A stretch of 64,000 nt of DNA from Macrostomum hystrix (GCA_950097015.1 CATNEN010000037.1:2604001-2668000), one strand, 5' to 3'. Positions 554 to 60,444 are shown, counted from the stretch's first letter. Program-made: numbers and translations. Notes: a model not told the origin generated them from the sequence alone.

Positions 554-2089
554 TCATCCCAGCGTCTCTTCATCCCAGCGTCACTTCATCTCAGTATCTC
601 TTCTTCCCAGTGTCTCTTCTTCCCAGTGTCTCTTCATCCCAGTGTATCTTCATCCCAGTGGTGTCTCTTCATCCCAGCGTCACTTTATCCCAGCGTCACT
701 TCATACCAGTGTCTCTTCATCCCAGTGTCTCTTCTTCCCAGTGTCTCTTCTTCCCAGTGTCTCTTCATCCCAGTGTCTCTTCATCCCAGTGTCTCTTCAT
801 CCCAGTGTCTCTTCATCCCAGTGTCTCTTCATCCCAGTGTCTCTTCTTCCCAGCGTCACTTCATCCCAGTGTCTCTTCATCCCAGTGTCTCTTCATCCCA
901 GTGTCTCTTCATCCCAGCGTCACTTCATCTCAGTGTCTCTTCTTCCCAGTGTATCTTCATCCCAGTGGTGTCTCTTCATCCCAGCGTCACTTTATCCCAG
1001 CGTCACTTCATACCAGTGTCTCTTCATCCCAGTGTCTCTTCTTCCCAGTGTCTCTTCTTCCCAGTGTCTCTTCATCCCAGTGTCTCTTCATCCCAGTGTC
1101 TCTTCATCCCAGTGTCTCTTCATCCCAGTGTCTCTTCATCCCAGTGTCTCTTCTTCCCAGCGTCACTTCATCCCAGTGTCTCTTCATCCCAGTGTCTCTT
1201 CATCCCAGTGTCTCTTCTTCCCAGTGTCTCTTCATCCCAGTGTCTCTTCATCCCAGTGTATCTTCATCCCAGTGTCTCTTCATCCCAGCGTCTCTTCATC
1301 CCAGTGTCTCTTCTTCCCAGTGTATCTTCATCCCAGCGTCTCTTCATCCCAGTGTCTCTTCTTTCCAGCGTCACTTCATCCCAGTGTCTCTTCATCCCAG
1401 TGTCTCTTCATCCCAGTGTCTCTTCTTCCCAGTGTCTCTTCATCCCAGTGTCTCTTCTTCCCAGTGTCTCTTCATCCCAGTGTCTCTTCTTCCCAGCGTC
1501 ACTTCATCCCAGTGTCTCTTCATCCCAGTGTCTCTTCATCCCAGTGTCTCTTCATCCCAGTGTCTCTTCTTCCCAGTGTCTCTTCATCCCAGTGTCTCTT
1601 CATCCCAGTGTATCTTCATCCCAGTGTCTCTTCATCCCAGCGTCACTTCATCTCAGTGTCTCTTCATCCCAGTGTCTCTTCATCCCAGTGTCTCTTCTTC
1701 CCAGCGTCACTTCATCCCAGTGTCTCTTCATCCCAGTGTCTCTTCATCCCAGTGTCTCTTCTTCCCAGTGTCTCTTCATCCCAGTCTCTCTTCATCCCAG
1801 TGTCTCTTCATTCTAGTGTCTCTTCATCCCAGTGTCTCTTCATCCCAGTGTCTCTTCATCCCAGTGTCTCTTCTTCCCAGTGTCTCTTCATCCCAGCGTC
1901 ACTTCATCCCAGCGTCACTTCATCCCAGTGTTTCTTCATCCCAGCGTCTCTTCATCCCAGTGTCTCTTCATCCCAGTGTCTCTTCTTCCTAGTGTCTCTT
2001 CATCCCAGTGTCTCTTCATCCCAGTGTCTCTTCATCCCAGTGTCTCTTCATCCCAGTGTCTCTTCATCCCAGTGTCTCTTCATCCCAGT
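554..2089. repeat. 16-bp minisatellite (CCCAGTGTCTCTTCAT)n, ~96 copies, with a ~307-bp higher-order duplication
   Basis: Period-16 array read directly. The rare variant block cccagtggtg...cactttatcccagcgtcacttcataccag occurs at 654 and again at 961. The overlapping ORFs in three frames are repeat artefacts. Confidence 0.97.
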
Positions 2090-2524
2090 TCCAGTGTTAT
2101 AGAAAAGAGGATTTAGATCCCTTGCCTCTGGCTTAAAATGGCTGACCGAAGCTTATTAAAGAAATTGCATCCGTCAAAAAAATGTTTCTGCGAATGGCTG
2201 CTCAAGCAAAAAAAAGTTTGGAGACGCGCAAAAATAAGAAAGTCTAGAAATATACAAAAATGAACTCAGGGAAAAGAAAGCAGTCTCACGTCCAGACAAA
2301 CCAGAGTGAGAACTGTGGCGCTTGGCTGAAAGCGAACCTAGGCGATGCCAGAAAGTTTTGCTTCATTAGCCACGGCTGGGAGATCTGGGAGCCAGATTTA
2401 GGACAGAAATTCAATTAGGATCTGCGACAGCGACCGGAATTTACTAAGAACCCTAAAAATAGTACAGTCTTTGTAACAAAAATTTGAGTTTTAATATCTC
2501 TTATCTCTTATATATTATTATTTT

Positions 2525-4112
2525 CAGTTCTCCTCACCGAATTCACAGTTCTCCTCACTAAATTCCCAGTTCTCCTCACCGAATTCCCAGTTCTCCTCAC
2601 CGAATTCCCAGTTCTCCTCACTAAATTCCCAGTTCTCCTCACCGAATTCCCAGTTCTCCTCACCGAATTCCCAGTTCTCCTCACTGAATTCCCAGTTCTC
2701 CTCACTGAATTCCAAGTTCTCCTTACTGAATTCCCAGTTCTCCTTACTGAATTCCCAGCTCTCCTCACCGAATTCCCAGTTCTCCTCACTAAATTCCCAG
2801 TTCTCCTCACCGAATTCCCAGTTCTCCTCACCGAATTCCCAGTTCTCCTCACTGAATTCCCAGTTCTCCTCACCGAATTCCCAGTTCTCCTCACTGAATT
2901 CCCAGTTCTCCTCACTGAATTCCCAGTTCTCCTCACTGAATTCCCAGTTCTCCTTACTGAATTCCCAGTTCTCCTCACTGAATTCCCAGTTCTCCTCACT
3001 GAATTCCCAGTTCTCCTCACTGAATTCCCTGTTCTCCTCACTGAATTCCCAGTTCTCCTCACTAAATTCCCAGTTCTCCTCACTGAATTCCCAGTTCTCC
3101 TCACTGAATTCCCAGTTCTCCTTACTGAATTCCCAGTTCTCCTCACTGAATTCCCAGTTCTCCTTACTGAATTCCCAGTTCTCCTCACTGAATTCCCAGT
3201 TCTCCTCACTGGATTCCCAGTTCTCCTCACTAAATTGCCAGTTCTCCTCACTGAATTCCCTGTTCTCCTCACTGGATTCCCAGTTCTCCTCATCGAATTC
3301 CCAGTTCTCCTCACTGAATTCCCAGTTCTCCTCACCGAATTCCCAGTTCTCCTCATCGAATTCCCAGTTCTCCTCACTGAATTCCCAGTTCTCCTCACTG
3401 AATTCCCAGTTCTCCTTACTGAATTCCCAGTTCTCCTTACTGAATTCCCAGTTCTCCTCACTGAATTCCCAGTTCTCCTCACTAAATTCCCAGTTCTCCT
3501 CACCGAATTCCCAGTTCTCCTCACCGAATTCCCAGTTCTCCTTACTGAATTCCCAGTTCTCCTTACAGAATTCCCAGTTCTCCTCACTGAATTCCCAGTT
3601 CTCCTCACCGAATTCCCAGTTCTCCTTACTGAATTCCCAGTTCTCCTCACTGAATTCCCAGTTCTCCTCACTAAATTCCCAGTTCTCCTTACTAAATTCC
3701 CAGTTCTCCTCACTAAATTCCCAGTTCTCCTCACCGAATTCCCAGTTCTCCTTACTGAATTCCCAGTTCTCCTTACTGAATTCCCAGTTCTCCTCACTGA
3801 ATTCCCAGTTCTCCTCACTGAATTCCCAGTTCTCCTCACTGAATTCCCAGTTCTCCTCACTAAATTCCCAGTTCTCCTCACTAAATTCCCAGTTCTCCTC
3901 ACCGAATTCCCAGTTCTCCTTACTGAATTCCCAGTTCTCCTCACTAAATTCCCAGTTCTCCTTACTGAATTCCCAGTTCTCCTCACTAAATTCCCAGTTC
4001 TCCTCACTAAATTCCCAGTTCTCCTCACTAAATTCCCAGTTCTCCTTACTGAATTCCCAGTTCTCCTCACTGGATTCCCAGTTCTCCTTACTGAATTCCC
4101 AGTTCTCCTCAC
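2525..4112. repeat. 21-bp minisatellite (GAATTCCCAGTTCTCCTCACT)n, ~75 copies
   Basis: Period-21 array; ORFs on both strands simply mirror the unit. Confidence 0.97.
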
Positions 4113-4787
4113 AAGAACTCGCAGTTCTTTTCACTGAGTATCCCGTTTTTTCAGTTTTGTGATCATCTGTTTATGCCAGTAGATTAATCAGATTTCTAGA
4201 CTGTTGTTTCAGATGCACTAAATGAATTCCCCAATTAATGTGATACTGATTTCTCTTGTTTGAATCGAGGTAGAAAAAGCTTTCCTTCAAAAATGACAGC
4301 CAAAGCTTCCACTTTTTCGCATTCCCCATTGGATCAAAATCCCACTGGGCATCCTTAAAGCAGCACCCTAAACGTCGCAACAAAAGCTGAGGGGATAATA
4401 AGACGGGAAAAAACGTTTCTGTGGGATCCTTAAACCGCCGCAAGGGAGTTGCATTCAGTTCCTACATGAACTGGTGCCAGAATTCAGTTTTAATTGCTGT
4501 ACATTTTCCGCATCAATTATGTCCAAGAAATTCTCCTGACCAATTTTGTTAGACTCTGTGGCAACGGCTAGCACTGGGGGCCATATTGAAAAACTGGAAC
4601 ATTTCTGGCAATGATTGGCAGACAGTTTAAAAGCAGATGCAGCTGCGACAGACCAGCCTTGACCATTTTCCGCCTTTTTCTATCCTTTAAGTTTTGTTAA
4701 CATTATTTCTCCCATTCTTTTGTACAGCTGCTAACTAGAATTGTTGACAACTTTTTAACTCACTAATTTCACTTTCACCATCATTCC

Positions 4788-6838
4788 CTCACTCTCACCA
4801 TCACTTCCTCACTCTCACCATCACTCCCTCACTCTCACCATCACTTCCTCACTCTCACCATCACTCCCTCACTCTCACCATCACTCCCTCACTCTCACCA
4901 TCACTCCCTCACTCTCACCATCACTCCCTCACTCTCACCATCACTCCCTCACTCTCACCATCACTCCCTCACTCTCACCATCACTCCCTCACTCTCACCA
5001 TCACTCCCTCACTCTCACCATCACTCCCTCACTCTCACCATCACTCCCTCACTCTCACCATCACTCCCTCACTCTCACCATCACTCCCTCACTCTCACCA
5101 TCACTCCCTCACTCTCACCATCACTCCCTCACTCTCACCATCACTCCCTCACTCTCACCATCACTCCCTCACTCTCACCATCACTCCCTCACTCTCACCA
5201 TCACTTCCTCACTCTCACCATCACTCCCTCACTCTCACCATCACTCCCTCACTCTCACCATCACTTCCTCACTCTCACCATCACTCCCTCACTCTCACCA
5301 TCACTTCCTCACTCTCACCATCACTCCCTCACTCTCACCATCACTCCCTCACTCTCACCATCACTCCCTCACTCTCACCATCACTCCCTCACTCTCACCA
5401 TCACTCCCTCACTCTCACCATCACTCCCTCACTCTCACCATCACTCCCTCACTCTCACCATCACTTCCTCACTCTCACCATCACTCCCTCACTCTCACCA
5501 TCACTCCCTCACTCTCACCATCACTCCCTCACTCTCACCATCACTCCCTCACTCTCACCATCACTCCCTCACTCTCACCATCACTCCCTCACTCTCACCA
5601 TCACTCCCTCACTCTCACCATCACTCCCTCACTCTCACCATCACTCCCTCACTCTCACCATCACTCCCTCACTCTCACCATCACTTCCTCACTCTCACCA
5701 TCACTCCCTCACTCTCACCATCACTCCCTCACTCTCACCATCACTTCCTCACCCTCACCATCACTCCCTCACTCTCACCATCACTCCCTCACTCTCACCA
5801 TCACTTCCTCACTCTCACCATCACTCCCTCACTCTCACCATCACTTCCTCACTCTCACCATCACTCCCTCACTCTCACCATCACTCCCTCACTCTCACCA
5901 TCACTCCCTCACTCTCACCATCATTCCCTCCCTCTCACCATCACTTCCTCACTCTCACCATCACTCCCTCACTCTCACCATCACTCTCACCATCACTCCC
6001 TCACTCTCACCATCACTCCCTCACTCTCACCATCACTCCCTCACTCTCACCATCACTCTCACCATCACTCCCTCACTCTCACCATCACTCCCTCACTCTC
6101 ACCATCACTCCCTCACTCTCACCATCACTCCCTCACTCTCACCATCACTTCCTCACTCTCACCATCACTCCCTCACTCTCACCATCACTCCCTCACTCTC
6201 ACCATCACTCCCTCACTCTCACCATCACTCCCTCACTCTCACCATCACTCCCTCACTCTCACCATCACTCCCTCACTCTCACCATCACTCCCTCACTCTC
6301 ACCATCACTTCCTCACTCTCACCATCACTCCCTCACTCTCACCATCACTCCCTCACTCTCACCATCACTTCCTCACTCTCACCATCACTCCCTCACTCTC
6401 ACCATCACTCCCTCACTCTCACCATCACTCCCTCACTCTCACCATCACTCCCTCACTCTCACCATCACTCCTCACTCTCACCATCACTCCCTCACTCTCA
6501 CCATCATTCCCTCCCTCTCACCATCACTCCCTCACTCTCACCATCACTCCCTCACTCTCACCATCACTCCCTCACTCTCACCATCACTCCCTCACTCTCA
6601 CCATCACTCCCTCACTCTCACCATCACTCCCTCACTCTCACCATCACTTCCTCACTCTCACCATCACTCCCTCACTCTCACCATCACTCCCTCACTCTCA
6701 CCATCACTTCCTCACTCTCACCATCACTCCCTCACTCTCACCATCACTTCCTCACTCTCACCATCACTCCCTCACTCTCACCATCACTCCCTCACTCTCA
6801 CCATCACTTCCTCGCTCTCACCATCACTTCCTCGCTCT
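4788..6838. repeat. 20-bp minisatellite (ACTCTCACCATCACTCCCTC)n, ~100 copies, G-free on the + strand
   Basis: Period-20 array with C/T variants and occasional partial units. Confidence 0.97.
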
Positions 6839-7889
6839 CTTCTAAGTTCAGTATCCAAAACTCGCATTCAGTCCTGTCCGAGCTAATGTTTTAGCTGGGA
6901 CAGCAGCTTTAATCTTCACAACTCGGCTTCTGCTAGAGTTTTCTCTCCCGGATTAAGACCATATAGCGGGGCCGGAAATCCACTGCCATCAGCGTGGGTC
7001 CCTGGCGCCCTCTCCGTGGGGATATCTCGTGTACTTTAAATTTGCAAAGCTCTCCTCGGCCTTCTCGCTTCTTCTCTGCGACCAGCCAGCCAGCCAGCCT
7101 ACTAGGTTTGTCTTTTGGATAAAGCAAAAAATGTCTGCCTCAGTCCAAACCGGAGCTCCTCCCACTTCTCCCCCTCTTTCTCCTTCTCCGCATACAAATG
7201 CGCCCCCGAATATCCCAGCCCCTTCCGTCCGACTGTTCCTTATCCCAGCCAGAGATCCCCCGTCTAACCGCAGAGAGCCGTGTCCCATTCCATCTGGGGC
7301 AATTCCTGGCGGACTTGCGTAAGACTTATCCACGCCAGTACTGCAAAAAACGCTCCTAAATACGCTCGTAGTTTTTCATCCCTGTTCAGTGCGCAAATGG
7401 ATCAAATGCTGGCCGGCCGTATCGAAACTAAATGGGAAAACGGAAAGACAGGCCGAATGGTTGGTACCGTTTGGCATAGCAGAGTGGCGCTCATTAGAAT
7501 GGTTTTTTGTTAATAACAAACGCCTACATGTATGCGCGATTTTTCTTAGAAATATAACTGATTTCCTACCGTCTTGAAGGCTTTGCTGCAGAGAGTTCGA
7601 ATCTGAAATTCGAAAGGTCGGGAGTTCGAATCTCAGAAAAATAAATACCGAATCCTTCAACTTGAAGCTTAGTAACCAAATGCTTTTGTTTACCCAGCTG
7701 CTAGGATAGAAACCAGTCCACAGACTGAACAGCTGTACACAGCCTATAGAAGCGCCGCAAAATTGCTTCCCAACCCAATGATCCAACACAGTTTGTCCAA
7801 GGCTGCAGTGTCTTAGTACTGTTATTGCTGTTAAAACTCCTGTATGACGCTGCGAACCTGTTAACCCCAACTTCCTGACATCCTCGCAG

Positions 7890-17483: not shown

Positions 17484-20400
17484 TCATTCTTCCCTACCGT
17501 CGCCTTTGTCATCTTCGCCACTCGAGTCCTCATCACCGCCACCGCCAGCGCCTCCCTGAAGGCGCCGCATCTCCAGACGGGCGATGCGCCGCTTCAGGCG
17601 ACCCTGCGTTGCGTCAAACTCGGACTGGGTGCGCGAGAACAGCACCTGAAAGGACTCCAGGTCTTCTTCCAGGCGTTGCGACTTCTGCTCCATTGTCTCC
17701 TGAGCGCGAAGCGCCTTGGCCAGCACTGCCTCGTCAATGAGGTTATCCTTGCGCAGCACCTGCTGGCCCTTCTCTAACAGCTTGACCTTGGCGTCCGGGT
17801 ATTCGGTCAGAGCATCCCACAGGTCGGTCTTGCTCAGGCAGAACAGGTCCGAGTAGCCATCGCTGCGCACGTTTGCAGTGCGACGGTTGCCAGTCTTGTT
17901 TCCCGGTATGTTTAGAATGGAGACCTCACCGAAGACGCTGCCCTCGCCGAGTGTCACAAAGACGGTCTTGCCGTCTGGCGATACCACGCTGAGCTTGCCG
18001 CGCTTCACAATGTACATCTCCTTGCCGATGTCGCCCTTGCGACAGATATAGTCGCCTGGTGAGAACACCTGCAGCTTGAGCTTGAGAACTAGCTCGACTA
18101 GCAGGCCTGGTTCGCAGTCCTGGAAGATGGCCACCCGTTTCAGCGTGTCGAAGTGCACATGGATGGCCACTTCAGCTTTGAGTTTGTCCGGCAGGGTGCC
18201 AAGTATATTTTCTTCGTCCAGCGACTGTTTGTTCTCCCACAGATAGTCAAACCAGCGTAGAACGCGGTGCTCGAGAGCCTTGCCGACTTTCCGAAATTCC
18301 ATGTAGCGCTTAGCCTGCAGCGAAAGGGGTCTCGTTTAAATACTTAAATACCCAGTTGTCTCTGCTTTGTTTCTCCATATTTTCTTAATTTTTTATAGTA
18401 AAAATAGAAAATTCTTGATGATCGCTTCGTCCGAGCTCACCCCGTCCATGCGCTGCTGAAACTCTGTACTTGCCGCGCTAATGTTAGACACCATGGAGCC
18501 GACGCTGCCGATGATGATAGCAAAAATTAGGATGCCGACTAGCAGAACGATGGTCTCAAAAATGTACTCGAACAGAGTCACTGGTCTAGGGATCTCGGCC
18601 ACAGCGGTCAGTGTCAGAGCGGACCAGTAGAACGAGTAGAGATACTTGGCATAGAGCTGTTGCATCTCCGTAGTTAAGTTAAACTGATCAGTATTGTCAA
18701 TCAGTAAGCCGTCCGGTCGCATCGGATAAGTCCAAGAGTCGCTACCCAAGCCGATCACCAGGCTGAAGGCAAAGTAAATGCACGCGTTCCAGTGAAAGAT
18801 TACCAAGATGTACATCATGAGGTTTAAGGCCCGGAACAGGTTCGGAAAGTTGGTGCGGGCCTCGGTGCGGTCGAAAAACTCTAGGAATTTGCCGAACTTC
18901 AACAGACGATTGGCTCGAACATAGGTGCCGTTTGTTGAAATCTGTGGCACCAGGTAGAGCAGGTCGGTGGGGAGAATCGATAGTACGTCCATTTTGAAGC
19001 GCACAGTGCGCCTATAGAAGCGGCGCAGCCTGCTCAGATCAGTGATCATCAGGCCTTGGTCCAGGACGCCTTGTGTGGAGTTGCAGAAATCAATCGACTA
19101 ATCAAATTCGTCATGCTTACAACTAGATGAAAGCATGCTCGCCAGAATTAAATTATTGGTGTGCGCAGTAGCTCTATCACGATACAATTTTGAGTTCCGC
19201 CACTTTCTGTTAAATATAAAATGTAATTCTTGAGAATTACCTGTCCGCGAGCTCAAGAACATGTCCACCAGGTTTACTAGGTCTGTCAAATAGTCGAACA
19301 GCAGCCAGACCCACAGGGTCTCCTGTAGCTGGGTGAACACAGATCTGGCTATGATGAACACCAGATTGTAGGAGAAGGCTGCGGACACTACGGCCAGCCA
19401 GTTATAATAGAAAGTCTGCGACGTGTCGACCACGAATTTGTAGGCGAAGCTTTCAGAAGGTGGAGGGATGAGCGTTGGCAAAGTCTTTGTGTTCAGTGCG
19501 ACATTATTGCTGTCATGTGCAGCCAGCGAGGAGGCATTCTGCCCATGACGCTGACTCCTGGGAACACACGCATACAGATACCGTATGCAGGTACAAACCC
19601 GTACAGGTTGTACATCTGCCCTGATTTTCTCATCGTGTACACTTTAACTGCGCCTTGGAGGTTGGCCCTAAAGGTCGCAAATTTCACGATGGGGGCTACG
19701 ACCAGCCCTAGCCTTCTCTCCGCGGCTGCGCCTCAAAAAATGTGCCCCCCGCGGAATCGAGCTCATGGACCTTGGTGCGAGAGGCAAACGCGTTAGTCCG
19801 CTCTACCACTCACTCACCCCCCTGAGAAAGTGGCAAGTAGTCATATCACTCACTGCCTCAGCCAGCCAGCTAATCGTTGTCCGAATGGCGTCCTAATTCT
19901 CGCCATTCCGCTTTCACCGCCGCCGATGCCTCCACCAGAATCGGCCGCTGCAGACGTTGCAGGCGTCATCTCGTGGTCGCCCATGTGAAGCTTTTGAAAG
20001 AAAGAACTTCGTCGTCGAAATCGGCTGCCCTCTTCAGCCTCGATCTCCGCCTGTTGCTGGCCTCTCTGCCGAGTGCTGCCCGACCGAGACAGCCACCTAG
20101 TCAGGAGCTGCAATTATAGGCGCGGCACTTCAGCTATGCGTTTGGGAAGGAAAGTCGATTTCTTAGGTGCGGACTACTAGTTATTGGCTAGCGGGGAACA
20201 AAGGAGGAAGAGAATGGGACCAGCATCATTCGCCTCTGTTCTCTTTCAATGCTAATTAGCCTTAGCCAATGTGACACCCTGAGTGCAGCAGCTCAACATT
20301 GTTAGTTTACTCGTACGTGACACAGGCCGTGTGAAATTTTAATTATGTCCTAACTCTAAATGTCCTAACTTTGCTAGTGTCCTAACTCGTTCTAATCATC

Positions 20401-21691: not shown

Positions 21692-22575
21692 CAGTATGAC
21701 TACCAAGCCATTTCCCCGCCCGTTTTTATACCAAGTGCGGATTCCCCCCCTGAAATTTTTTCGGCAGCGCCTGAATGCTAACAGCGTTGGGTAGTAACTG
21801 ATTAGTTGACAGACTAGATATTGTCAATCAACAGGGTGTCCATAGTGGCCAGTTTCCACCTGTTGTGGATTATTATTATCAATTATCAATTATTATCAAT
21901 TAATAATATTTGATTACACCTGCCCTAATCGGGTCAGATGTGCAGCCGACAGCACAGCCGCAGCTATTGCGCGGCGCATCTGAAGGCTGCGTACGGCTGT
22001 TCAGTCCATGGACTGGGGGGACGCCACACCCACCTTCAATTATCCCAGCTAATGCTGGTACTCATTTAACAGCTGGGTGAATTGAAACAATGCAGAGTTA
22101 AGTGTCTTGCTAAATGACACAAATTGTTTAAGTGGAGACGGGAATCGAACCCATGACCTTCAAGTCGTGAGTCCGACGCCCTAACCACTAGGCTACAACC
22201 TCTACTGTAGCCCTTGAAGGTGCAGCAAATCCGTCTAGATAAAGGTAAGGTGACCACCGAACTCGGATATGATTTAGGCACATTCGAGTGACATGCAAAA
22301 AAAATTTGAAGGCCTGGCAAGGCCGCACTGAGGTGCAGTGCCAATTCGTGTATAGGGGTGCATGATTAACACCTAAGCGCTTATCGAAAAAAACGGAATT
22401 TCGGCCAGAAGCATTGAATATCTCGACGGTCTGAAGAGTTGGCGACTTAATTCTTGCTTCAGAAGATGCGCAAAAAAGTTGGCCCGTGTTCTTGAGTTTC
22501 GTGGGCTTGCGTTGTTCCGTTCTGGTTCGGCACAAAAAATGTCAAGGGGGAAAATCCCCCCTGGTAGTTCTACTG
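21692..22575. mobile_element. Non-autonomous TIR element (MITE) flanked by TTAA, with a nested SINE
   Basis: TTAA|CAGTATGACTACCAAG ... CTGGTAGTTCTACTG|TTAA; the internal sequence aligns with the copy at 50020-50627. Confidence 0.85.
21922..22200 (-). mobile_element. tRNA-derived SINE family A (near full length, CORE-like central segment)
   Basis: The reverse complement reads GTAGCCTAGTGGTTAGGGCG...GGTTCGATTCCC, then TGTGTCATTTAGCAAGACACTTAACTC (resembles the CORE-SINE domain), then CAGTCCATGGACTG. It is absent from the 50-kb MITE copy, so it inserted later. Confidence 0.85.
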
Positions 22576-24120: not shown

Positions 24121-25317
24121 TCAAAGTCGGATCGCCATATGCAGTTTCTCTTCGGGCCGGCCCGAGTTCGAAACCTTCTCTTCTTCTCCGATGGCAGCCT
24201 CAACCAGCCCGTTTTCGGTCATCTCGGCGGCTGAGTAGCGCGGGAAGCCCGGAATATTGACGGTGACGTGGAAGCTCTCATAGTCGATGACGCACTCCCC
24301 GTTGTCGTTGTGAAGAATGTTGAGATCCTCAAATCTATGGCCCCAGCGAATCTCCGACGGCAGGTAGCTGGTTCGAGCCTCCGACGTGGCGCCGGTGGAG
24401 ACGACAACGCCATTCATGAACACCAGCAGCTCGAACTCTGCCGCGTACATTTCGCCGGCAGTCAGGTTCCAGAATGGCGACCGGCTGTCGATGCGGTGCT
24501 CGACGATGAGCGGCCAGCCAAGGAACAGTCGGGCGTCGCCACCGCCGAGGCCCATATCAACATTCTGCTGCTCCAGTTGGAGGATTTCCCCTTCGGAGGT
24601 CAGGCGTCGCCTAACCAGGACGCCGCGCACGCTGCAGTCGATGAGGTGGGAGCGGCGAGCGTCGCCCACGCGGCACAGCAGCACCAGGTGGCCGTCGCGG
24701 GTGCAGATCACGGCGCTCTTGCTGAAAAGCAGCGTGCCGGTGCGGTGCTTCGACTTGGTCAGCTTTGCTAGAACAGCGCCGGTCATGAGCGTCGAGATGA
24801 TTAGGTTGGCGTAGGACTGCAGCGTCACCAGGAGCACAGCGATCGGACACTTGTCCGACGGCGAACGCGAACCGTATCCAATGGTGATCTGAGTCTCCAT
24901 GGAAAACAGCAGCGTGGCTAAGAACGAATTGCAATTGATAAGGCAGGGCTCGAACCCTGGCGGCGGCGTGGTCATGTAGTCACCGTGCGCGTAGCTCACT
25001 GCCCACCAGAAGAAGGTGAAGAGCATCCAGCAGCCGAAGAACGCGGTAAAGAAGACGGCCAGGCAGTAGCGCCACTTCAAGTCAACCAGGGTGGTGAACA
25101 TGTCCGCCATGTAGCGCCGCTTTCGCTTGCGCACATTGCTGTGGATCACGTTGCACTTGCCATTTTTCAGCACCAGACGTTCGTAGCCTCGCTGGCGCAT
25201 GACTGCGAACTGGGATTCGCGGCGCATTGTGACAATCAGCAGTTCGACCAGTTGATAATATCTACTGCGAGTCTTTGAGGACTGGAACAAACTGGTTGCG
25301 CGAATAAATACCAACAC
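24121..25317 (-). CDS. Inward-rectifier potassium channel (Kir/IRK family), single exon
   Basis: KNGKCNV, FTTLVDLKWR, pore FSMETQITIGYGSR, KCP, LFSKSAVI, RTSYLPSEIRWGHRF. The first ATG is MRRESQF (~25228); the track start at 25317 is GTG. Confidence 0.93.
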   Translation of the reverse strand: MLVFIRATSLFQSSKTRSRYYQLVELLIVTMRRESQFAVMRQRGYERLVLKNGKCNVIHSNVRKRKRRYMADMFTTLVDLKWRYCLAVFFTAFFGCWMLFTFFWWAVSYAHGDYMTTPPPGFEPCLINCNSFLATLLFSMETQITIGYGSRSPSDKCPIAVLLVTLQSYANLIISTLMTGAVLAKLTKSKHRTGTLLFSKSAVICTRDGHLVLLCRVGDARRSHLIDCSVRGVLVRRRLTSEGEILQLEQQNVDMGLGGGDARLFLGWPLIVEHRIDSRSPFWNLTAGEMYAAEFELLVFMNGVVVSTGATSEARTSYLPSEIRWGHRFEDLNILHNDNGECVIDYESFHVTVNIPGFPRYSAAEMTENGLVEAAIGEEEKVSNSGRPEEKLHMAIRL

Positions 25318-29299: not shown

Positions 29300-32200
29300 T
29301 CATTTGACAGCCTCAGTGCCATCACGGTTGGCAGCAAAAGCTGAGTGAAGACTGCGCAGAAGCTCAACCAGTTTACGGTCCCCCTCGGAGACGTCGGAAA
29401 GTTCTTTAGCAACCGTCGAGTTTTCCTTAGCAACCGTCGAGTTTTCCTTAGCAACCGTCGAATTTTCCTTAGCAACCGTCGAGTTTTCCTTAGCAACCGT
29501 CAAGTTTTCCTTAGCAACCATCGAGTTCTCCTTATCAACCGATGATTTCTCTTTTAAAGCAGACGAGTTTAACGTGCCATTGTAGGAATCGACCCTGGAA
29601 ACTGTTGAGGCCTTAGCAACAGTTGCATCATTGTCTTTAAAATCGTCGCTATTGGTAGGCAGACTAGCCCAGACGGCACCGACACCTGGCACGGGCTCAC
29701 GCTCAAGGAATCGCGTCATTAATTCCAACGATTTGGATACTAAAGATTTGTCAGCACCGTCAAACACGGCCCGGTACAGCCAGTAAAAGTTGCAGCCCTC
29801 CAGCCGGCCGGAGATCCTTCTCAGAGCGCCAAGGCAGCGGTGGAATTCAAAGAAGCTGAAATGATTTGCGGCAGGCACCAGCGGAGCCAGCAGAAGGTCG
29901 ATTGGCGTAGCGACGGCGGCGAGGCGGCAGTCGTCTAGTTGTTCAACGCAGCCAAGGTTGACAACGCGACCGTCAATTGACGAAAGCGAGGAGCAGGAGA
30001 TCGCTAGGTAGGCTTCGACTGCCAGGCCGGCGGCCCGCAGCAGCTTCAGGCCGAGACCGTCAGAGTCGAACATGGCCAGGACGCGCAGAGGACGAGTTGG
30101 ACTCGAAGGCTGACTGCTGGAGGCGCTGTAGGATGCTCGACAGGTAATGGGACATTTCTCACTGGAAGCATTGTGGGTCAACAGGTAGAGAAGTAGGATA
30201 TTTCCCACTGGAAGCATTGTGGATCAATAGGTAGAGAAATGGGATATTTCCCACTGGATGCATTGTGGATCAATAGGAAGAGAAATGGGATATTTCCCAC
30301 TGGAAGCATTGTGAATCAACGGGTAGATCAATGGGATATTTCCCACTGAAAGCATTGTGGATCAACGGATAGATCAATGGGATATTTCCCACTGGAAGCA
30401 TTGTGGATCAATAGGTAGAGAAATGGGATATTTCCCACTGGAAGCATTGTGAATCAACGGGTAGATCAATGGGATATTTCCCACTGAATGCATTGTGGAT
30501 CAACAGGTAGAGAAGTAGGATATTTCCCACTGGATGCATTGTGGATCAATAGGAAGAGAAATGGGATATTTCCCACTTGAAGCATTGTGAATCAACGGGT
30601 AGATCAATGGGATATTTCCCACTGAAAGCATTGTGGATCAATAGGTAGAGAAATGGGATATTTCCCACTGGAAGCATTGTGAATCAATAGGTAGAGAAAT
30701 GGGATATTTCTGACTGGAAGCATTGTGGATCAATAGGAAGAGAAATGGGATATTTCCCACTGGAAGCATTGTGGATCAACGGGTAGATCAATTGGATATT
30801 TCCCACTGAAAGCATTGTGGATCAATAGGTAGAGAAATGGGATATTTCCCACTGGAAGCATTGTGGATCAATAGGAAGAGAAATGGGATATTTCCCACTG
30901 GAAGCATTGTGGATCAACGGGTAGATCAATTGGATATTTCCCACTGAAAGCATTGTGGGTCAACAGGTAGAGAAATGGGATATCTTCCACTCAGTTTTTA
31001 CATAAAGAGACAAACTCAGGTGACTTAGGGCACCCAGTTACAAAAAATTCCAGCTGAAAAGCTTACAGTCCGACAGGCCGCAACAGGCCCGCAGCAGCCG
31101 GCTCGCACAGGTAGCAGGTCCATTTGACGGCCTCCAACTCTGAGTAAGCGGCCAGAGCCCAGGCCGCCGGGCCAATCAGGATAGTCAGGCAGGCCTGTGG
31201 ATTGGTGGCTGAGTCTTATTGAATGAAGCAGGTCGATTTTGGGCACCAGAAAGTTTACCTCAAGAATGAAGGTACACGGAGATGGCAGGTAGACGGAAGA
31301 GATTGCAGGCACAGGGAAGAGATGGCAAGTACAGGAAGGACTGTATTTTCTATGACTTCATTACTACAAAAAATCTAGCTGTCTATGACCGGAAGTAAAG
31401 CTAAAGATTAGGCGATTAAAAATAGGGTCGGCGCCGCATACCTGGCAGTAATGTAGGCCGCATTTTGAACAGGTGGCCGTCTGGAGGCCGCAGGGCAGGG
31501 CGCAGACGATGCAAACCCGTCGGCTGTCTGGGCCGCCTTCGCCAGCTTCAGTGACCCGCCTGCCGCACGGCTTGCACAGCTGGCCAACAAATTTCGGGTG
31601 CGCGATTAGCTCGCCAGCGGCGGAGGCGCAGGCCAGGCACAGAGCCGGCTGGACCGCGTCAGCGCCGGGCGGGCGATGATAGCTATGCATTAGCTGATCC
31701 GTAACGGGGCGCGAACCCGGGACCTCGCCTATGGTGCTATCGACGCCGACACCACCGTTGCCACCGTGGCCAGCGCCTTTGGTTGCCTTCTTGCGACCGC
31801 GAGCAGCGGTTGACCGGCCGGTCTTTTTCTTGGAGGTTAATCGGTTCTCCTTGACTTTGTCCAAATTAAACTCGGAGTCGCTGTCTACTGAGGCGGCATT
31901 AGTAAGGGCATTGGAAGCAGACACGGTAGTGGCAGTGGCAGCATTGGCAGTGGCAGAAGAAGCAGAAGCGACAGGCTTGGCTGAAATAACACAAGTTTTG
32001 TGATACGGGATGTGACAGATCATCTGCGCGGGATAATCAAGATAATCTTGATCTGGCCCTGGGAGTGCGGCTGCTCAGACCAATCAGGATATGGCAGTGC
32101 GGCTGCTCAGACCAATGAGGATGTGAGAGTGTGGCTGCTCACACCAATGAGGATGTGAGAGTGTGGCTGCTCAGACCAATGAGGATGTGAGAGTGTGGCT

Positions 32201-34362
32201 GCTCAGACCAATGAGGATGTGAGAGTGTGGCTGCTCAGACCAATGAGGATGTGAGAGTGTGGCTGCTCACACCAATAAGGATATGGGAGTGTGGCTGCTC
32301 ACACCAATGAGGATGTGAGAGTGTGGCTGCTCACACCAATCAGGATATAGAGCAGTGCGGCTGCTCACACCAATGAGGATGTGAGAGTGTGGCTGCTCAC
32401 ACCAATAAGGATATGGGAGTGTGGCTGCTCACACCAATGAGGATGTGAGAGTGTGGCTGCTCACACCAATCAGGATATAGAGCAGTGCGGCTGCTCACAC
32501 CAATGAGGATGTGAGAGTGTGGCTGCTCACACCAATAAGGATATGGAAGTGTGGCTGCTCACACCAATGAGGATGTGAGAGTGCGGCTGCTCAGACCAAT
32601 CAGGATATAGAGCAGTGCGGCTGCTCACACCAATGAGGATTTGAGAGTGCGGCTGCTCAGACCAATCAGGATATGGCAGTGCGGCTGCTCAGACCAATGA
32701 GGATTTGAGAGTGTGGCTGCTCACACCAATGAGGATGTGAGAGTGTGGCTGCTCACACCAATGAGGATGTGAGAGTGTGGCTGCTCACACCAATGAGGAT
32801 GTGAGAGTGTGGCTGCTCACACCAATGAGGATGTGAGAGTGCTGCTGCTCAGATCAATAAGGATATGGGAGTGTGGCTGCTCACACCAATGAGGATGTGA
32901 GAGTGTGGCTGCTCAGACCAATGAGGATGTGAGAGTGTGGCTGCTCAGACCAATGAGGATGTGGGAGTGTGGCTGCTCACACCAATGAGGATGTGAGAGT
33001 GCGGCTGCTCAGACCAATGAGGATGTGAGAGTGTGGCTGCTCACACCAATGAGGATGTGAGAGTGCTGCTGCTCAGACCAATGAGGATATGGGAGTGTGG
33101 CTGCTCAGACCAATGAGGATGTGAGAGTGCTGCTGCTCAGATCAATAAGGATATGGGAGTGTGGCTGCTCACACCAATGAGGATGTGAGAGTGTGGCTGC
33201 TCACACCAATGAGGATGTGAGAGTGTGGCTGCTCAGATCAATGAGGATATGGGAGTGTGGCTGCTCAGACCAATGAGGATGTGAGAGTGTGGCTGCTCAG
33301 ACCAATGAGGATGTGGGAGTGTGGCTGCTCACACCAATGAGGATGTGAGAGTGTGGCTGCTCAGACCAATGAGGATGTGAGTGCTGCTGCTCAGATCAAT
33401 AAGGATATGGGAGTGTGGCTGCTCACACCAATGAGGATGTGAGAGTGTGGCTGCTCACACCAATGAGGATGTGAGAGTGTGGCTGCTCACACCAATTAGG
33501 ATGTGAGAGTGTGGCTGCTCAGATCAATGAGGATATGGGAGTGTGGCTGCTCAGACCAATGAGGATATGAGAGTGTGGTCAAACCAAAGATTTGGGAATG
33601 ACAGTTAAACTTAGGCCTTAGAAACAATGGCAGGTCAGAGCACTAATAAATGAAATTATTCGAAAATTGGGCCAGCATACTCAGTAGATTGAAACTAGAC
33701 AGCCCCAATGCCTCACATGTGCCAGCTAATGCTGTGGCGGTAGGTTTACTAGTGCTTCCATGAGACGCCCTTCTGTGCCGCTCTCGCATAGCATCCAAGC
33801 ACTGCTCGGCCCAAGCTGAAATCCTGCAATGGTCGCCTCCCTCATTGACTAGAGCCACTTTGCCAGGCTCCAGTTTGGCTAGCAATTCGCGCAGTTCGCC
33901 AAGCTCAGTCTGGCTGGGCACAGCAGCGCGGCACAGCAGCTCCTCCAGTAGGCGGTCGAAGCCGCGATGCTGCAAGGAGCCGCCGCGCGCCTTCGGAACA
34001 ACTGAGGAATTCGGCAGATGGCCCCGGCCCTTCTCGCTGCACAATGGCACCAGAGATGATTTGGCAACTTCCGACACTTTTCCCTCGGCCAGCCAGAGGA
34101 GCCAGCGCCAGCCAGGTCTAGCTGGACGGAGGTGGCAGCGCCAGCCGGATACGACCATTCCGGGATAGTGGCGCGCACCCCACGGCGCCCAGGCTAGGGC
34201 GCCAAAGTCTGGTACTAGCTCATCTGGACTTGGCGACAACATGCTCTCAGTGCATTTGCCAGCCTCATTGTCTGAGCCAGAGGTGGAAGCGGAGGAGGAA
34301 GTGTCTTCATGATAGCTAGCTTTGTTTGAACGGCGACGCTTAGGCTTATTTGGCTTTGGCAT
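29300..34362 (-). CDS. DNMT3-family protein (PWWP + ADD + degenerate methyltransferase-like domain), predicted catalytically inactive, 4 exons, ~712 aa
   Basis: Exons 34362-33717, 31980-31442, 31194-31067 and 30125-29300 join in frame via GT-AG. PWWP-like WAPWGARHYPGMVV..RWLLWLAEGK; ADD CLAC..HPKFVGQLCKPC..CIVC..CSKC..CQAC..ILIGP..WTCYLC; MTase-like PLRVLAMFD..FFEFHR..FYWL..RFLEREPV..VWASLP. Additional 5' exons are possible. Confidence 0.9.
29400..29540 (-). repeat. Coding 21-bp minisatellite (VAKENST)n, ~6 copies, in the DNMT3-like C-terminal tail
   Basis: Unit TTAGCAACCGTCGAGTTTTCC on the + strand, in frame within the last exon. Confidence 0.9.
30150..30992. repeat. 46-bp minisatellite, ~18 copies, filling DNMT3-like intron 3
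   Basis: Unit GGGATATTTCCCACTGGAAGCATTGTGGATCAATAGGTAGAGAAAT; period 46 (30196 to 30242). Confidence 0.95.
32080..33578. repeat. 32-bp minisatellite, ~47 copies, each with a CCAAT box, in DNMT3-like intron 1
   Basis: Unit GTGTGGCTGCTCA(G/C)ACCAATGAGGATGTGAGA; period 32. Confidence 0.95.
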
Positions 34363-35234: not shown

Positions 35235-35447
35235 TCCATCTTAGAAATTGCTGTGTACCAGGAACACGGATTGCTTTCTTCTCCAACTGCTTCTGGTATG
35301 GCTAAGTTCTATGAGCAAGTTGACAAGCTTTTTGACCTTGCCAATAATGTAGCACCATTCAAGGCCATTACAGCTGAGAACCTGCAGGCAAAAAGTCAAG
35401 AAATTGATTATTGGATCGTCTGGCTGAACTCTCTGAGGTTCCAGTAC
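35235..35447 (+). pseudogene. P-element/THAP9-type transposase fragment
   Basis: ASGMAKFYEQVDKLFDLANN...K.ITAENL...WLNSLRF resembles the TA.F....D.LFD..N segment of P-element transposases, and it lies inside P-type TIRs. Confidence 0.65.
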
Positions 35448-35449
35448 AG

Positions 35450-35906
35450 CTCCCAAAGCATTGGCTGGGTACAGGTGGCGCCAGAGAAATTCCTCCAGGT
35501 GGGTTTTGAAGAGTCCAGCCGAGGTTCTGTGCATGGACCTGAACTTTGCCTTTGCATGGGCCCAGGTCCCCTCAATGGTGTTTGTGTGCACTGTACTGTC
35601 CAGTGGGTCAACAAAGTGCAGCCTATGATTGACAACAGCATGGTTTGCCAGGCCAGCGTATGCAAGCCAGCCATCTGTGAGGATGCAGCTGCCAGGTAGG
35701 ACATGCCACTGGATGATTGGCATCAGGGTAGCAGCGGACCGGTCTGCAACAATTACAATCATGCACTTCTTTGTCTGATGCTCGACCATCCCAAAGACCC
35801 AATGGCCCTCTCGCCAGGCCCCCCGGTGGTACTTGCGGTGCATGAACTTTGACTCATCGATCTCTACATCGATACCCGGTCGACCTAGCTGAATTGGATA
35901 ATCCAC
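35450..35906 (-). pseudogene. Merlin/IS1595-family transposase catalytic-domain fragment
   Basis: VEIDESKFMHRKYHRG..WVFGMVE..TDGWLAY..VNH..FVD..HTNTIEGTW..EEFLWR; the D, D and E positions are all present; no N-terminal region. Confidence 0.9.
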
Positions 35907-59110: not shown

Positions 59111-60444
59111 ATGCATTACTACAACTGGTTCTACTTTTTCGAGTTGGCATTCGCAGCCGGTGTTGTCGTTATTCTTATTCTACTGGTCGCGGCACACACT
59201 ATCGCCATCGTGTGCGCAAGGTCCTACTTTTACAAGAAGGTAACATTTGAGCCCGCGGCGTTAGAGGCTGGCCTACCTGGCGTGTCCATCATCAAGCCGC
59301 TGGTTGGCATAGACAAGAATGTGTACACCAACTTGGAGACCTACTTCACTCTGGACTACCCGAACTATGAGCTGTTATTCTGCCTGGAGAGTGCGGACGA
59401 CGCAGTCAACATGGTGGTCGACACGCTGGTACAGAAATACCCGAAAGTGGACGCCCGAGTGTTCACGTCTCCAATGCGCTACAATGTCAATCCAAAGATT
59501 AACAACATGATGCAGGGCTACCAAGCTGCAAAGTACGACCTCGTGATGATCTCCGACAGCGGCGTCAAGATGCGGCCAGAAGCATTGGCGGACATGGTGT
59601 GGTGCATGTCACAAAAGGACGTGGGCATTGTGCACCAGATGCCATTCATCGAACAGCGGCCCGGCTTCCGCAACCTGGCGCATTCCACGTACTTCGGCTG
59701 CTCGCACGCCAAGTTTTACATAGCCGCCTACTGCCTGGGCATCAACTGCTGCACTGGAATGTCATGCCTGGTGCGCAAGCCAGTAGTCGACAAGCTGCCT
59801 GGTGGTCTGGCCTACTTCGGTCGCTACCTGGCCGAAGATTTCTTCCTGGCGCAGCACTTCATTGCCAACGGCTACAAACTGGCGCTGTCGCACCTGCCGG
59901 CACTGCAAGATGGCACCGGAGAGATCGTCAGTCTGCGCAGGCGTCTCATTCGATGGCTTCAGCTGCGCACCGCCATGGTGCCCCATGTGGTGAGTAGGCC
60001 GACATCTTTGTCGCAATTAGCACTCTAGAGAATATTCAAACTGACACCAAACGAACATGTCAACCAACTGTACAGGTTCTACTAGAACTGGTGTCCGAAT
60101 GCCTCGTGTCCGGCCTCATGGGCGCCTGGGCCCTCGCCTTCCTCCTGCCGGGCCTCGTGAATCCGGCCGTCTACTTTCTCAGCCACTGCCTGGTGTGGCT
60201 GTTGGCAGACTACGCCATGCTGTGCAGCTGCCTGGACCCCACCGAGTCACCGATGTTCAACAGATTGGCCTTTCTATTCTCTTGGCTGCTCTGCATCGCC
60301 ACGCAGCCGGTCACCCTTCTGCGGTCGCTTTGCCAATCCGAAATCGTCTGGCGCGACAAGCGCTTCCGTCTGCAGTGGGGCGGCTCCACCGTGGAGCTGC
60401 CGGCCCTGCCCATGAACCTCAGCGCGGTCAGGCAGTCGGTATGA
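59111..60444 (+). CDS. UGCG: Ceramide glucosyltransferase (glucosylceramide synthase), 2 exons, ~415 aa
   Basis: Exons 59111-59989 and 60076-60444 (phase 0). N-terminal TM, GVSIIKPLVG, NPKINN, MISDSG, GMSCLVRK, LAEDFF, RRLIRWLQLR (GT-A D,DXD,D,(Q/R)XXRW pattern). Confidence 0.95.

Follow-up and report, generated by a model that had tools for sequence, protein, structure and literature searches.

Catalytically dead partners of DNA methyltransferases make up a short list, which holds DNMT3L and DNMT3B3 of mammals, DNMT3.1 of Daphnia magna and DRM3 of Arabidopsis. In the plant, the active de novo methyltransferase DRM2 needs DRM3, a catalytically mutated paralogue, for its normal activity. Mammalian DNMT3L is derived from a DNMT3 and carries an ADD domain together with a dead, C-terminally reduced methyltransferase-like domain; it coexists with active DNMT3s, keeps the phenylalanines of the FF interface and lacks the RD interface, which leaves it only one protein-protein face. 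The FF interface with Dnmt3L was defined by mouse F728 and F768, the equivalents of human F732 and F772 (PMC2588524), and the roles of the FF and RD interfaces in mammals have been described (PMC2588524; bioRxiv 10.1101/2025.06.10.658647). DNMT3B3 and related inactive DNMT3B isoforms have the domain order PWWP, ADD, inactive methyltransferase; DNMT3B3, whose lesion is centred between motif VIII and the C-terminus, is an accessory subunit at the outer positions of the tetramer, and the other inactive isoforms likewise act as accessory proteins (PMC4853477, PMC7608744). DNMT3.1 of D. magna combines a PWWP domain, an ADD domain and a diverged methyltransferase domain without most motifs (PMC8016896; Nguyen et al. 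2020, Genesis e23396), coexists with an active paralogue, and has already been proposed to interact with the active DNMT3.2 in a DNMT3L-like manner (PMC8016896). Here we compare these systems with a gene of the flatworm Macrostomum hystrix, which lies on the minus strand at 29300-34362 of a stretch of 64,000 nucleotides (GCA_950097015.1, CATNEN010000037.1:2604001-2668000; hereafter the window).

The gene is a member of the DNMT3 family by descent and is not an enzyme, and it is under purifying selection. Its architecture is closest to those of DNMT3B3 and D. magna DNMT3.1. On the basis of its sequence and of analogy with these proteins, it may well be a functional pseudo-enzyme gene, a DNMT3 paralogue whose product serves an active DNMT3 as a non-catalytic partner through the FF face, a reading that we hold with belief and doubt in about equal measure. 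An initial annotation of the window had described a DNMT3 paralogue that is catalytically dead yet retains PWWP, ADD and the FF residues, and our column audit and alignments bear this out; it had also presented the gene as a candidate invertebrate analogue of DNMT3L, for which there is a precedent, because D. magna DNMT3.1 has the same architecture and carries the same hypothesis (PMC8016896). What is new is a dead DNMT3 paralogue under selection in Macrostomum, dead DNMT3 partners being already known elsewhere; in the literature searched we found no description of such a paralogue in Macrostomum, and nothing for Mlig033444 or Mlig034009. Among flatworms, Macrostomum lignano has DNMT1, DNMT3 and low 5-methylcytosine (5mC), and DNMT1 and DNMT3 are lost in planarians and schistosomes (PMC11292947, PMC9246332).

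Gene structure and state of the domains

The gene model, rebuilt from the sequence, consists of four exons (34362-33717, 31980-31442, 31194-31067 and 30161-29300) and encodes a product of 724 amino acids. Every intron is bounded by GT-AG, the intron phases are 1/0/2, and the 724 codons contain no internal stop, so that the phase-consistent open reading frame (ORF) reported initially is reproduced. Given the base composition of the coding sequence, the probability that 724 codons stay free of stops by chance is 2e-11, and the frame was open in 0 of 20000 shuffles.

Pfam detected neither a PWWP nor a methyltransferase domain on the exons, and its ADD_DNMT3 match on exons 2-3 (E 1.2e-4, 22.4 bits) falls under the cut-off of 26; where Pfam missed domains, they were called by sequence search against the PDB and from predicted folds. 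Exon 1 (33717-34362) supplies the start codon, a basic N-terminus resembling a nuclear localisation signal (KPKRRR) and a divergent DNMT3-type PWWP domain with a helical extension. Against the PDB it matched the PWWP domains of DNMT3B and DNMT3A (phmmer, E 4e-11 to 1e-5), and its AlphaFold2 (AF2) model, built from a 38-sequence alignment, is a beta-barrel with helices [predicted local distance difference test (pLDDT) 82] whose top Foldseek matches are again the DNMT3B and DNMT3A PWWP domains (E 2e-7). The WWP motif reads HYP in this gene and SYP in the active Macrostomum paralogue described below, and the divergence of the motif is therefore a trait of the lineage and not part of the catalytic death.

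Exon 2 (31442-31980) encodes a low-complexity linker, the motif EVPGSRPxTDQLM, the GATA-like zinc finger of the ADD domain and the first half of its PHD finger, as assigned by Pfam and alignments. The second half of the PHD finger (CLTxLxGPAAWALA ... WxCxLC ... GLLRP) is encoded by exon 3 (31067-31194), which is identified by 65% identity to an orthologue in M. lignano (locus L003, see below) and by the alignment of the DNMT3 family. All conserved columns of zinc-ligand cysteines are filled in both dead orthologues, with one cysteine pair two residues closer. The PWWP, ADD and methyltransferase-like folds named in the initial annotation are thus recovered by phmmer, AF2, Foldseek and the alignment of the ADD cysteines. 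The acidic loop through which ADD reads unmethylated H3K4 (H3K4me0) had been noted as altered; it does differ, and the change goes beyond alteration, since the loop reads EGGPDSRR in the window and AVIGVGAR, without any acidic residue, in M. lignano, versus D/E-D-G-Y-Q in active DNMT3s. Because the loop is unconserved between the dead orthologues, histone reading by ADD in the manner of DNMT3L appears doubtful. Just N-terminal of ADD, the stretch EVPGSRP(V/I)TDQLM (window ~31700-31740; L003 ~1160-1200) is near-invariant between the dead orthologues, in a linker that is otherwise unalignable between them.

Exon 4 (29300-30161) comprises 286 codons and the stop. It matches the DNMT3A methyltransferase domain 2qrv_A (phmmer, E 4e-5), and the DNMT3A and DNMT3B catalytic domains rank first in Foldseek (E 6e-10) for its AF2 model, which was built with a 52-sequence alignment (A2). 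Residues 21-170 (29651-30100) form a confident core (pLDDT of 10-residue blocks 77-94, mostly >87) that corresponds, by these searches and by the column audit, to beta1-beta5 and helices A-D of the DNMT3 Rossmann fold; homology to the methyltransferase fold is limited to this N-terminal half and a terminal helix.

To audit the losses we took 47 active DNMT3s and the 94 columns in which their alignment is conserved to 80% or more. The window gene keeps 29 of the 94, and 23 are kept jointly by it and the M. lignano orthologue, namely RVL, FD, PxDL, FF..R.L, W, RFL, P, W..P and the Leu of the C-terminal helix. These 23 include all 7 columns that are conserved in the two FF helices and, apart from the F-D of motif I, no column of catalysis or of contact with S-adenosylmethionine (SAM). 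The glycine of motif I is lost (FDG reads FDS), as is the glutamate of motif II; LAPLV stands in place of motif IV GGSPC, and the catalytic loop that would follow has been deleted; motif VI ENV reads RAV, with both E and N gone; an 11-residue deletion has removed RxR; and the target recognition domain (TRD) and motifs IX/X have given way to a coding repeat. The replacements of motifs IV and VI and the deletion of RxR agree with the initial annotation in the 52-sequence alignment, whereas in motif I the alteration stands and the proposed insertion (FDSDG) does not, the alignment showing substitutions. With substitutions or deletions at the motif I glycine, the motif II glutamate, the PC loop, ENV, RxR, the TRD and motifs IX/X, the protein cannot bind SAM, nor can it flip and methylate cytosine.

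The repeat in place of the TRD is an in-frame tandem array of 21 bp in 6.7 copies (29402-29541), which encodes VAKENST repeats and, at exon 4 residues 172-245, a disordered linker (pLDDT <50). Motifs IX and X had been described as replaced by a VAKENST repeat tail; the repeat itself is confirmed, and the last ~30 residues are instead the C-terminal helix of DNMT3 (29336-29425). The segment behind the linker, KLVELLRSLHSAF, can be aligned with the final helix of active DNMT3s (for example PLVAHLLRPLRHFF in P0083 of M. lignano), is modelled with confidence (pLDDT 82-93) and is also conserved in the orthologue from M. lignano. Nothing is left of the region responsible for the RD dimer (DNMT3A-DNMT3A) and the DNA-binding interface. 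The helices of the FF interface, FFEFHR (helix C) and TRFLE (helix D), are invariant in both dead orthologues, and both interface phenylalanines are retained, as had been claimed: counted from the catalytic Cys710, the second Phe of FFEF is human DNMT3A F732 and the Phe of RFLE is F772. In a recent cryo-EM study, this C-terminal helix adjoins the F-F interface helices (bioRxiv 10.1101/2025.06.10.658647).

Other exons or isoforms might supply PC, ENV and RxR, as the initial annotation had considered, together with motifs IX/X, and the product would then be catalytically active. In favour of this there is nothing beyond the general chance that exons went unrecognised. A tblastn search with two active DNMT3s as queries found no further DNMT3-like coding sequence in the 64-kb window, and hidden exons therefore cannot restore the missing motifs; moreover, the losses lie inside one continuous exon and are common to the orthologue, and the C-terminal helix and stop codon follow within the same exon. 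We give this explanation next to no credence.

The gene is unusually rich in satellites in both species. Intron 1 (31981-33716), delimited by its GT-AG borders, is nearly all 32-bp satellite (32063-33578, 47 copies; Tandem Repeats Finder), and intron 3 (30162-31066) is likewise nearly filled, by a 46-bp satellite (30146-30991) that is confined to this intron within the window; in M. lignano, intron 2 carries a further one (L003 1480-2457, 21 bp x 47). The acceptor of exon 4 and the first 15 nt of that exon are the last, degenerate unit of the 46-bp satellite, each unit of which has a CAG acceptor-like site. This satellite has a relative of 42 bp in the corresponding intron of the M. lignano gene (L003 2737-3374): the two have the blocks ATTGATCC, GTGGGAA, TAT and CCCAT in common, and their alignment score was matched by only 1 of 500 shuffles, despite saturated synonymous sites. 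Scans for Rfam families and tRNAs gave nothing at the locus.

The orthologue in M. lignano and selection on the gene

The orthologue was located by synteny, with an intronless gene for an inward-rectifier K+ channel (Kir; window 24121-25227, minus strand; Pfam IRK / IRK_C) as the anchor. This Kir shares ~79-80% identity with M. lignano P0122 and 53-55% with the next-closest Kir proteins of that species; a look-up of its exact protein sequence found no record. At the P0122 locus (L003, NIVC01000372.1), the dead DNMT3 lies ~4.4 kb upstream of Kir, and the order and strand of the two genes are the same as in the window. We find there the tail of exon 1, an exon 2 that ends at 1447, exon 3 at 2494-2621 and exon 4 at 3452-4208, with exon junctions common to both species; the start of exon 2 lies in the unalignable N-terminal linker, where a candidate phase-compatible acceptor is present at L003 960. 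The M. lignano annotation records a 378-amino-acid product at 1196-4208 that equals the junctions of the orthologue exactly (252+128+754 nt). The same losses are seen in this protein, with LLAPSAPSPDD at the PC loop, WLYRPE at ENV, the RxR stretch deleted and VAK(D/E)xS repeats where the TRD would be, and the same elements are kept, namely FFEFHRCL, TRFLE, every ADD cysteine and the terminal helix.

To assess selection, we compared the two dead orthologues, which are 52% identical in amino acids over 376 aligned codons, by the Nei-Gojobori method (NG86). The ratio of nonsynonymous to synonymous divergence (dN/dS) is 0.32 overall (bootstrap 0.23-0.42), 0.19 in the dead domain (0.09-0.33), 0.31 in ADD and 0.59 in the tail, with 0.15 for the Kir control, values that are rough because dS is saturated between the two species. 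No bootstrap replicate reached a dN/dS of 1 or more, except 0.7% for the tail, and 92 of the 197 residues identical in the pair are encoded by different codons. The dead DNMT3 is under purifying selection and is not decaying.

A decaying pseudogene, which had been considered from the start with dN/dS as the check, or an annotation artefact would be a remnant of DNMT3 in a lineage losing DNA methylation as other flatworms have done. Every catalytic motif is gone, the gene is barely recognised by Pfam, its introns are filled by satellites of which one extends into exon 4, it has evolved three times faster than the adjoining Kir (dN 0.41 versus 0.14), and planarians and schistosomes did lose DNMT1 and DNMT3. 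Against this stand the 724 open codons, the absence of bootstrap values at or above 1 outside the tail, the full set of ADD zinc cysteines and the annotation of the M. lignano gene with the same splice junctions. Since the intact orthologue bears the same lesions across saturated synonymous divergence, inactivation is older than the split of the species and the frame has been kept ever since. An open frame, lesions common to both species and the strongest constraint in the dead domain together leave the pseudogene explanation largely refuted, and we regard it as very improbable.

An exhaustive profile search with the dead domain among 1.84 billion representatives returned only two matches at E <1e-3, both of them partial matches to active DNMT3s and one from a tick. 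The annotated 378-amino-acid M. lignano orthologue, to which tblastn gives 46% identity over 273 residues, was missed by this search, whose blank therefore cannot be read as an absence of orthologues. A tick or other chelicerate as the source of the window, as these first matches had suggested, was rejected because the PWWP exon and the Kir gene indicate a flatworm close to, but distinct from, M. lignano.

Active paralogues, a probable block duplication and other dead methyltransferases

The initial annotation had called for a DNMT3 phylogeny and for the active paralogue in the same genome; in M. lignano, the nearest sampled species, the dead DNMT3 coexists with active DNMT3. The active copies (P0083, P0097, P0115 and P0118) have GGSPC, ENV and RxR as well as FFEFHR / SRFL. 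The PWWP exon of the window is 38% identical to P0083, with a near-identical core of 33 residues that is not found in other DNMT3s, and a word-indexed search with the PWWP region of P0083 found only the active M. lignano copies. At the active locus (L002, P0083), a Kir gene lies ~5 kb away in convergent orientation (L002 29037-33738); it is 54% identical to the window Kir and split into at least three exons. The pairing of DNMT3 with Kir at two loci therefore indicates an old block duplication. The dead block is intron-poor: Kir is intronless both in the window and in L003 (8673-9857), whereas the paralogous L002 Kir has at least three exons. Intron positions are not cleanly common to the dead gene (4 exons) and the active paralogue (at least 8 exons), and they give no support either way on the mode of duplication.

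In a tree that includes PWWP, obtained by a quick search, the dead pair falls together with the active Macrostomum DNMT3s in a single clade with a support of 97.6 in the Shimodaira-Hasegawa-like approximate likelihood ratio test (SH-aLRT), a clade that joins long, compositionally odd branches and dissolves when PWWP is omitted. Without PWWP, the dead pair is a long branch with no resolved placement.

The likeness to mammalian DNMT3L extends to every feature given for it above, with coexistence of dead and active forms shown for the flatworms in M. lignano. The resemblance had been drawn to DNMT3L specifically; it stands for a dead domain with FF residues, but the closest architectural match is DNMT3B3, with PWWP, ADD and a deleted TRD. 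Unlike DNMT3L, the flatworm protein has a PWWP domain, its acidic ADD loop is not conserved, and a repeat linker replaces its TRD and motifs IX/X while the terminal helix is retained. Its origin is also independent, as it groups with the Macrostomum DNMT3s in a tree that held no DNMT3L sequence; in place of orthology with the mammalian gene we find a lineage-specific PWWP signature, membership of the Macrostomum clade and a paralogous DNMT3+Kir block.

DNMT3B3 keeps motifs I-VIII, including the catalytic cysteine. It is a splice isoform of an active gene, whereas the flatworm protein is encoded by a separate gene in which the loss is larger and takes motifs I, IV, VI, VIII and X as well. Daphnia DNMT3.1, like the flatworm gene, sits beside an active paralogue (in M. 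lignano, the dead L003 and the active P0083/L002). It belongs to another phylum and would stem from an independent duplication; it is said to keep motif VI, which is lost in the flatworm gene; its active partner lacks PWWP, whereas active Macrostomum DNMT3 keeps a PWWP-like domain; and a knock-out phenotype is known for the Daphnia gene. Membership of the Macrostomum DNMT3 clade argues for an origin independent of Daphnia DNMT3.1, and the guide-RNA site of D. magna DNMT3.1 was not found in the window. The plant protein DRM3 has UBA domains and a methyltransferase domain that is rearranged, and only the methyltransferase fold is common to it and the flatworm gene.

Three further sequences in alignment A2, P0010 and P0030 of the tick Rhipicephalus microplus and P0008, a Logan sequence that groups with them, have GDSPSS for GGSPC and FGSI for FENV, and no Pfam methylase domain is recorded for them. 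Judging from these motifs, catalysis appears to have been lost in this set of DNMT3 copies too, and independently, so that dead DNMT3 copies seem to be recurrent in invertebrates.

Around the gene, the promoter region probably holds what is left of a transposon, seen as a 221-amino-acid ORF with a DDE transposase domain of the ISXO2/IS1595 kind (Pfam E 4e-18; window 35241-35906) that is on the minus strand like the gene itself and lies ~880 bp upstream of its start codon. The window further contains exons of a cyclic-nucleotide-gated channel (Ion_trans, cNMP_binding and CLZ; 17484-19049, minus strand) and a family-21 glycosyltransferase similar to ceramide glucosyltransferase (59111-60028, plus strand), together with an Rfam tRNA match of 37.5 bits (22137-22196, minus strand) that ARAGORN did not call. 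Three back-to-back satellite arrays with extreme GC skew occupy 554-6839 (16 bp x 96, 21 bp x 77 and 20 bp x 104) and create long spurious ORFs in several frames; the 21-bp array shows weak, periodic tblastx similarity to L002 3096-3749.

Possible role and significance

A DNMT3L-like accessory role is plausible from the features retained in the sequence. The proposed course of events would begin with an old duplication of the DNMT3+Kir block in the macrostomid lineage, followed by loss of catalysis in one copy. The dead protein would then use its FF face to dock on an active DNMT3 dimer whose own FF face is free, and a tetramer in the order dead-active-active-dead would result. Because the dead protein can offer only the FF interface, it would cap oligomerisation and may stabilise the active site of its partner, as DNMT3L and DNMT3B3 do, and its own PWWP, possibly with ADD, would be brought to the complex as additional modules for contact with chromatin. 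We suggest tentatively, and with slightly more doubt than belief, that flatworms independently evolved a subunit of the DNMT3L/DNMT3B3 type, in which chromatin modules are joined to a minimal interface module that caps or tunes the active enzyme. That this module might consist of half a Rossmann fold, the two FF helices and the terminal helix is part of the same suggestion and is put forward with the same reserve.

Several observations weigh against a partner role. Helices C and D are core helices, and their retention may reflect the stability of the fold alone. The aromatic cage of PWWP is only in part canonical, the H3K4me0-reading loop of ADD is unconserved between the dead orthologues, and the PWWP of the M. 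lignano orthologue is out of view, the gene being cut there by the start of the contig. The active DNMT3 is that of M. lignano, a species other than the window's own. The dependence of the clade on PWWP and the saturation of dS, given with the values above, count on the same side.

The conserved PWWP and ADD folds could instead belong to a factor of chromatin or transcription that acts independently of methylation, in which these domains read or bind chromatin, the dead half-domain is no more than a scaffold or a module for self-association, and there is no functional link to an active DNMT3. Daphnia DNMT3.1, with the same architecture, alters the expression of thousands of genes under starvation, and its authors considered methylation-independent roles (PMC8016896); the low 5mC of M. 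lignano (PMC11292947) fits this explanation as well. However, the strongest constraint (dN/dS 0.19) falls on the dead methyltransferase half-domain rather than the reader domains, the FF-interface helices do not vary between the orthologues, and it is the histone-reading loop of ADD that is unconserved, so that we consider such a factor unlikely, if still worth serious attention.

Some inactive DNMT3B splice variants inhibit DNMT3 activity. The structural evidence that underlies a stimulating partner would serve equally for a negative regulator or decoy, which would bind through the FF face and inhibit the active DNMT3 or sequester it off its targets, so that methylation stays low. The low 5mC in M. 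lignano agrees with this, and inactive DNMT3B splice variants modulate DNMT3 activity in vitro (PMC3130282). On the other hand, the known partners with only an FF face, DNMT3L and DNMT3B3, stimulate and cap (PMC2588524, PMC7608744), and no sequence feature points specifically to inhibition; we regard a decoy as improbable.

DNA methylation is barely characterised in flatworms, in which Macrostomum kept DNMT1/3 with low 5mC and planarians and schistosomes lost both, and a conserved dead DNMT3 beside an active one would be a regulatory layer of the Macrostomum toolkit that was not described before. The gene adds an independent candidate to the short list of dead methyltransferase partners formed by DNMT3L, DNMT3B3, Daphnia DNMT3.1 and DRM3, and it lends weight to the idea that non-catalytic subunits acting through the FF face have arisen repeatedly among de novo methyltransferases. 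RNA interference by soaking and transgenesis exist for M. lignano, which makes it a tractable system in which the hypothesis of an accessory role can be tested directly. The much-reduced catalytic-like domain amounts to a natural deletion experiment on the parts of the fold that an accessory subunit needs, and, if the accessory role is true, the protein would define experimentally the smallest piece of the fold required for partner function. Dead partners would then be a recurrent, and perhaps near-obligatory, feature of de novo methyltransferases across mammals, Daphnia, ticks, plants and flatworms.

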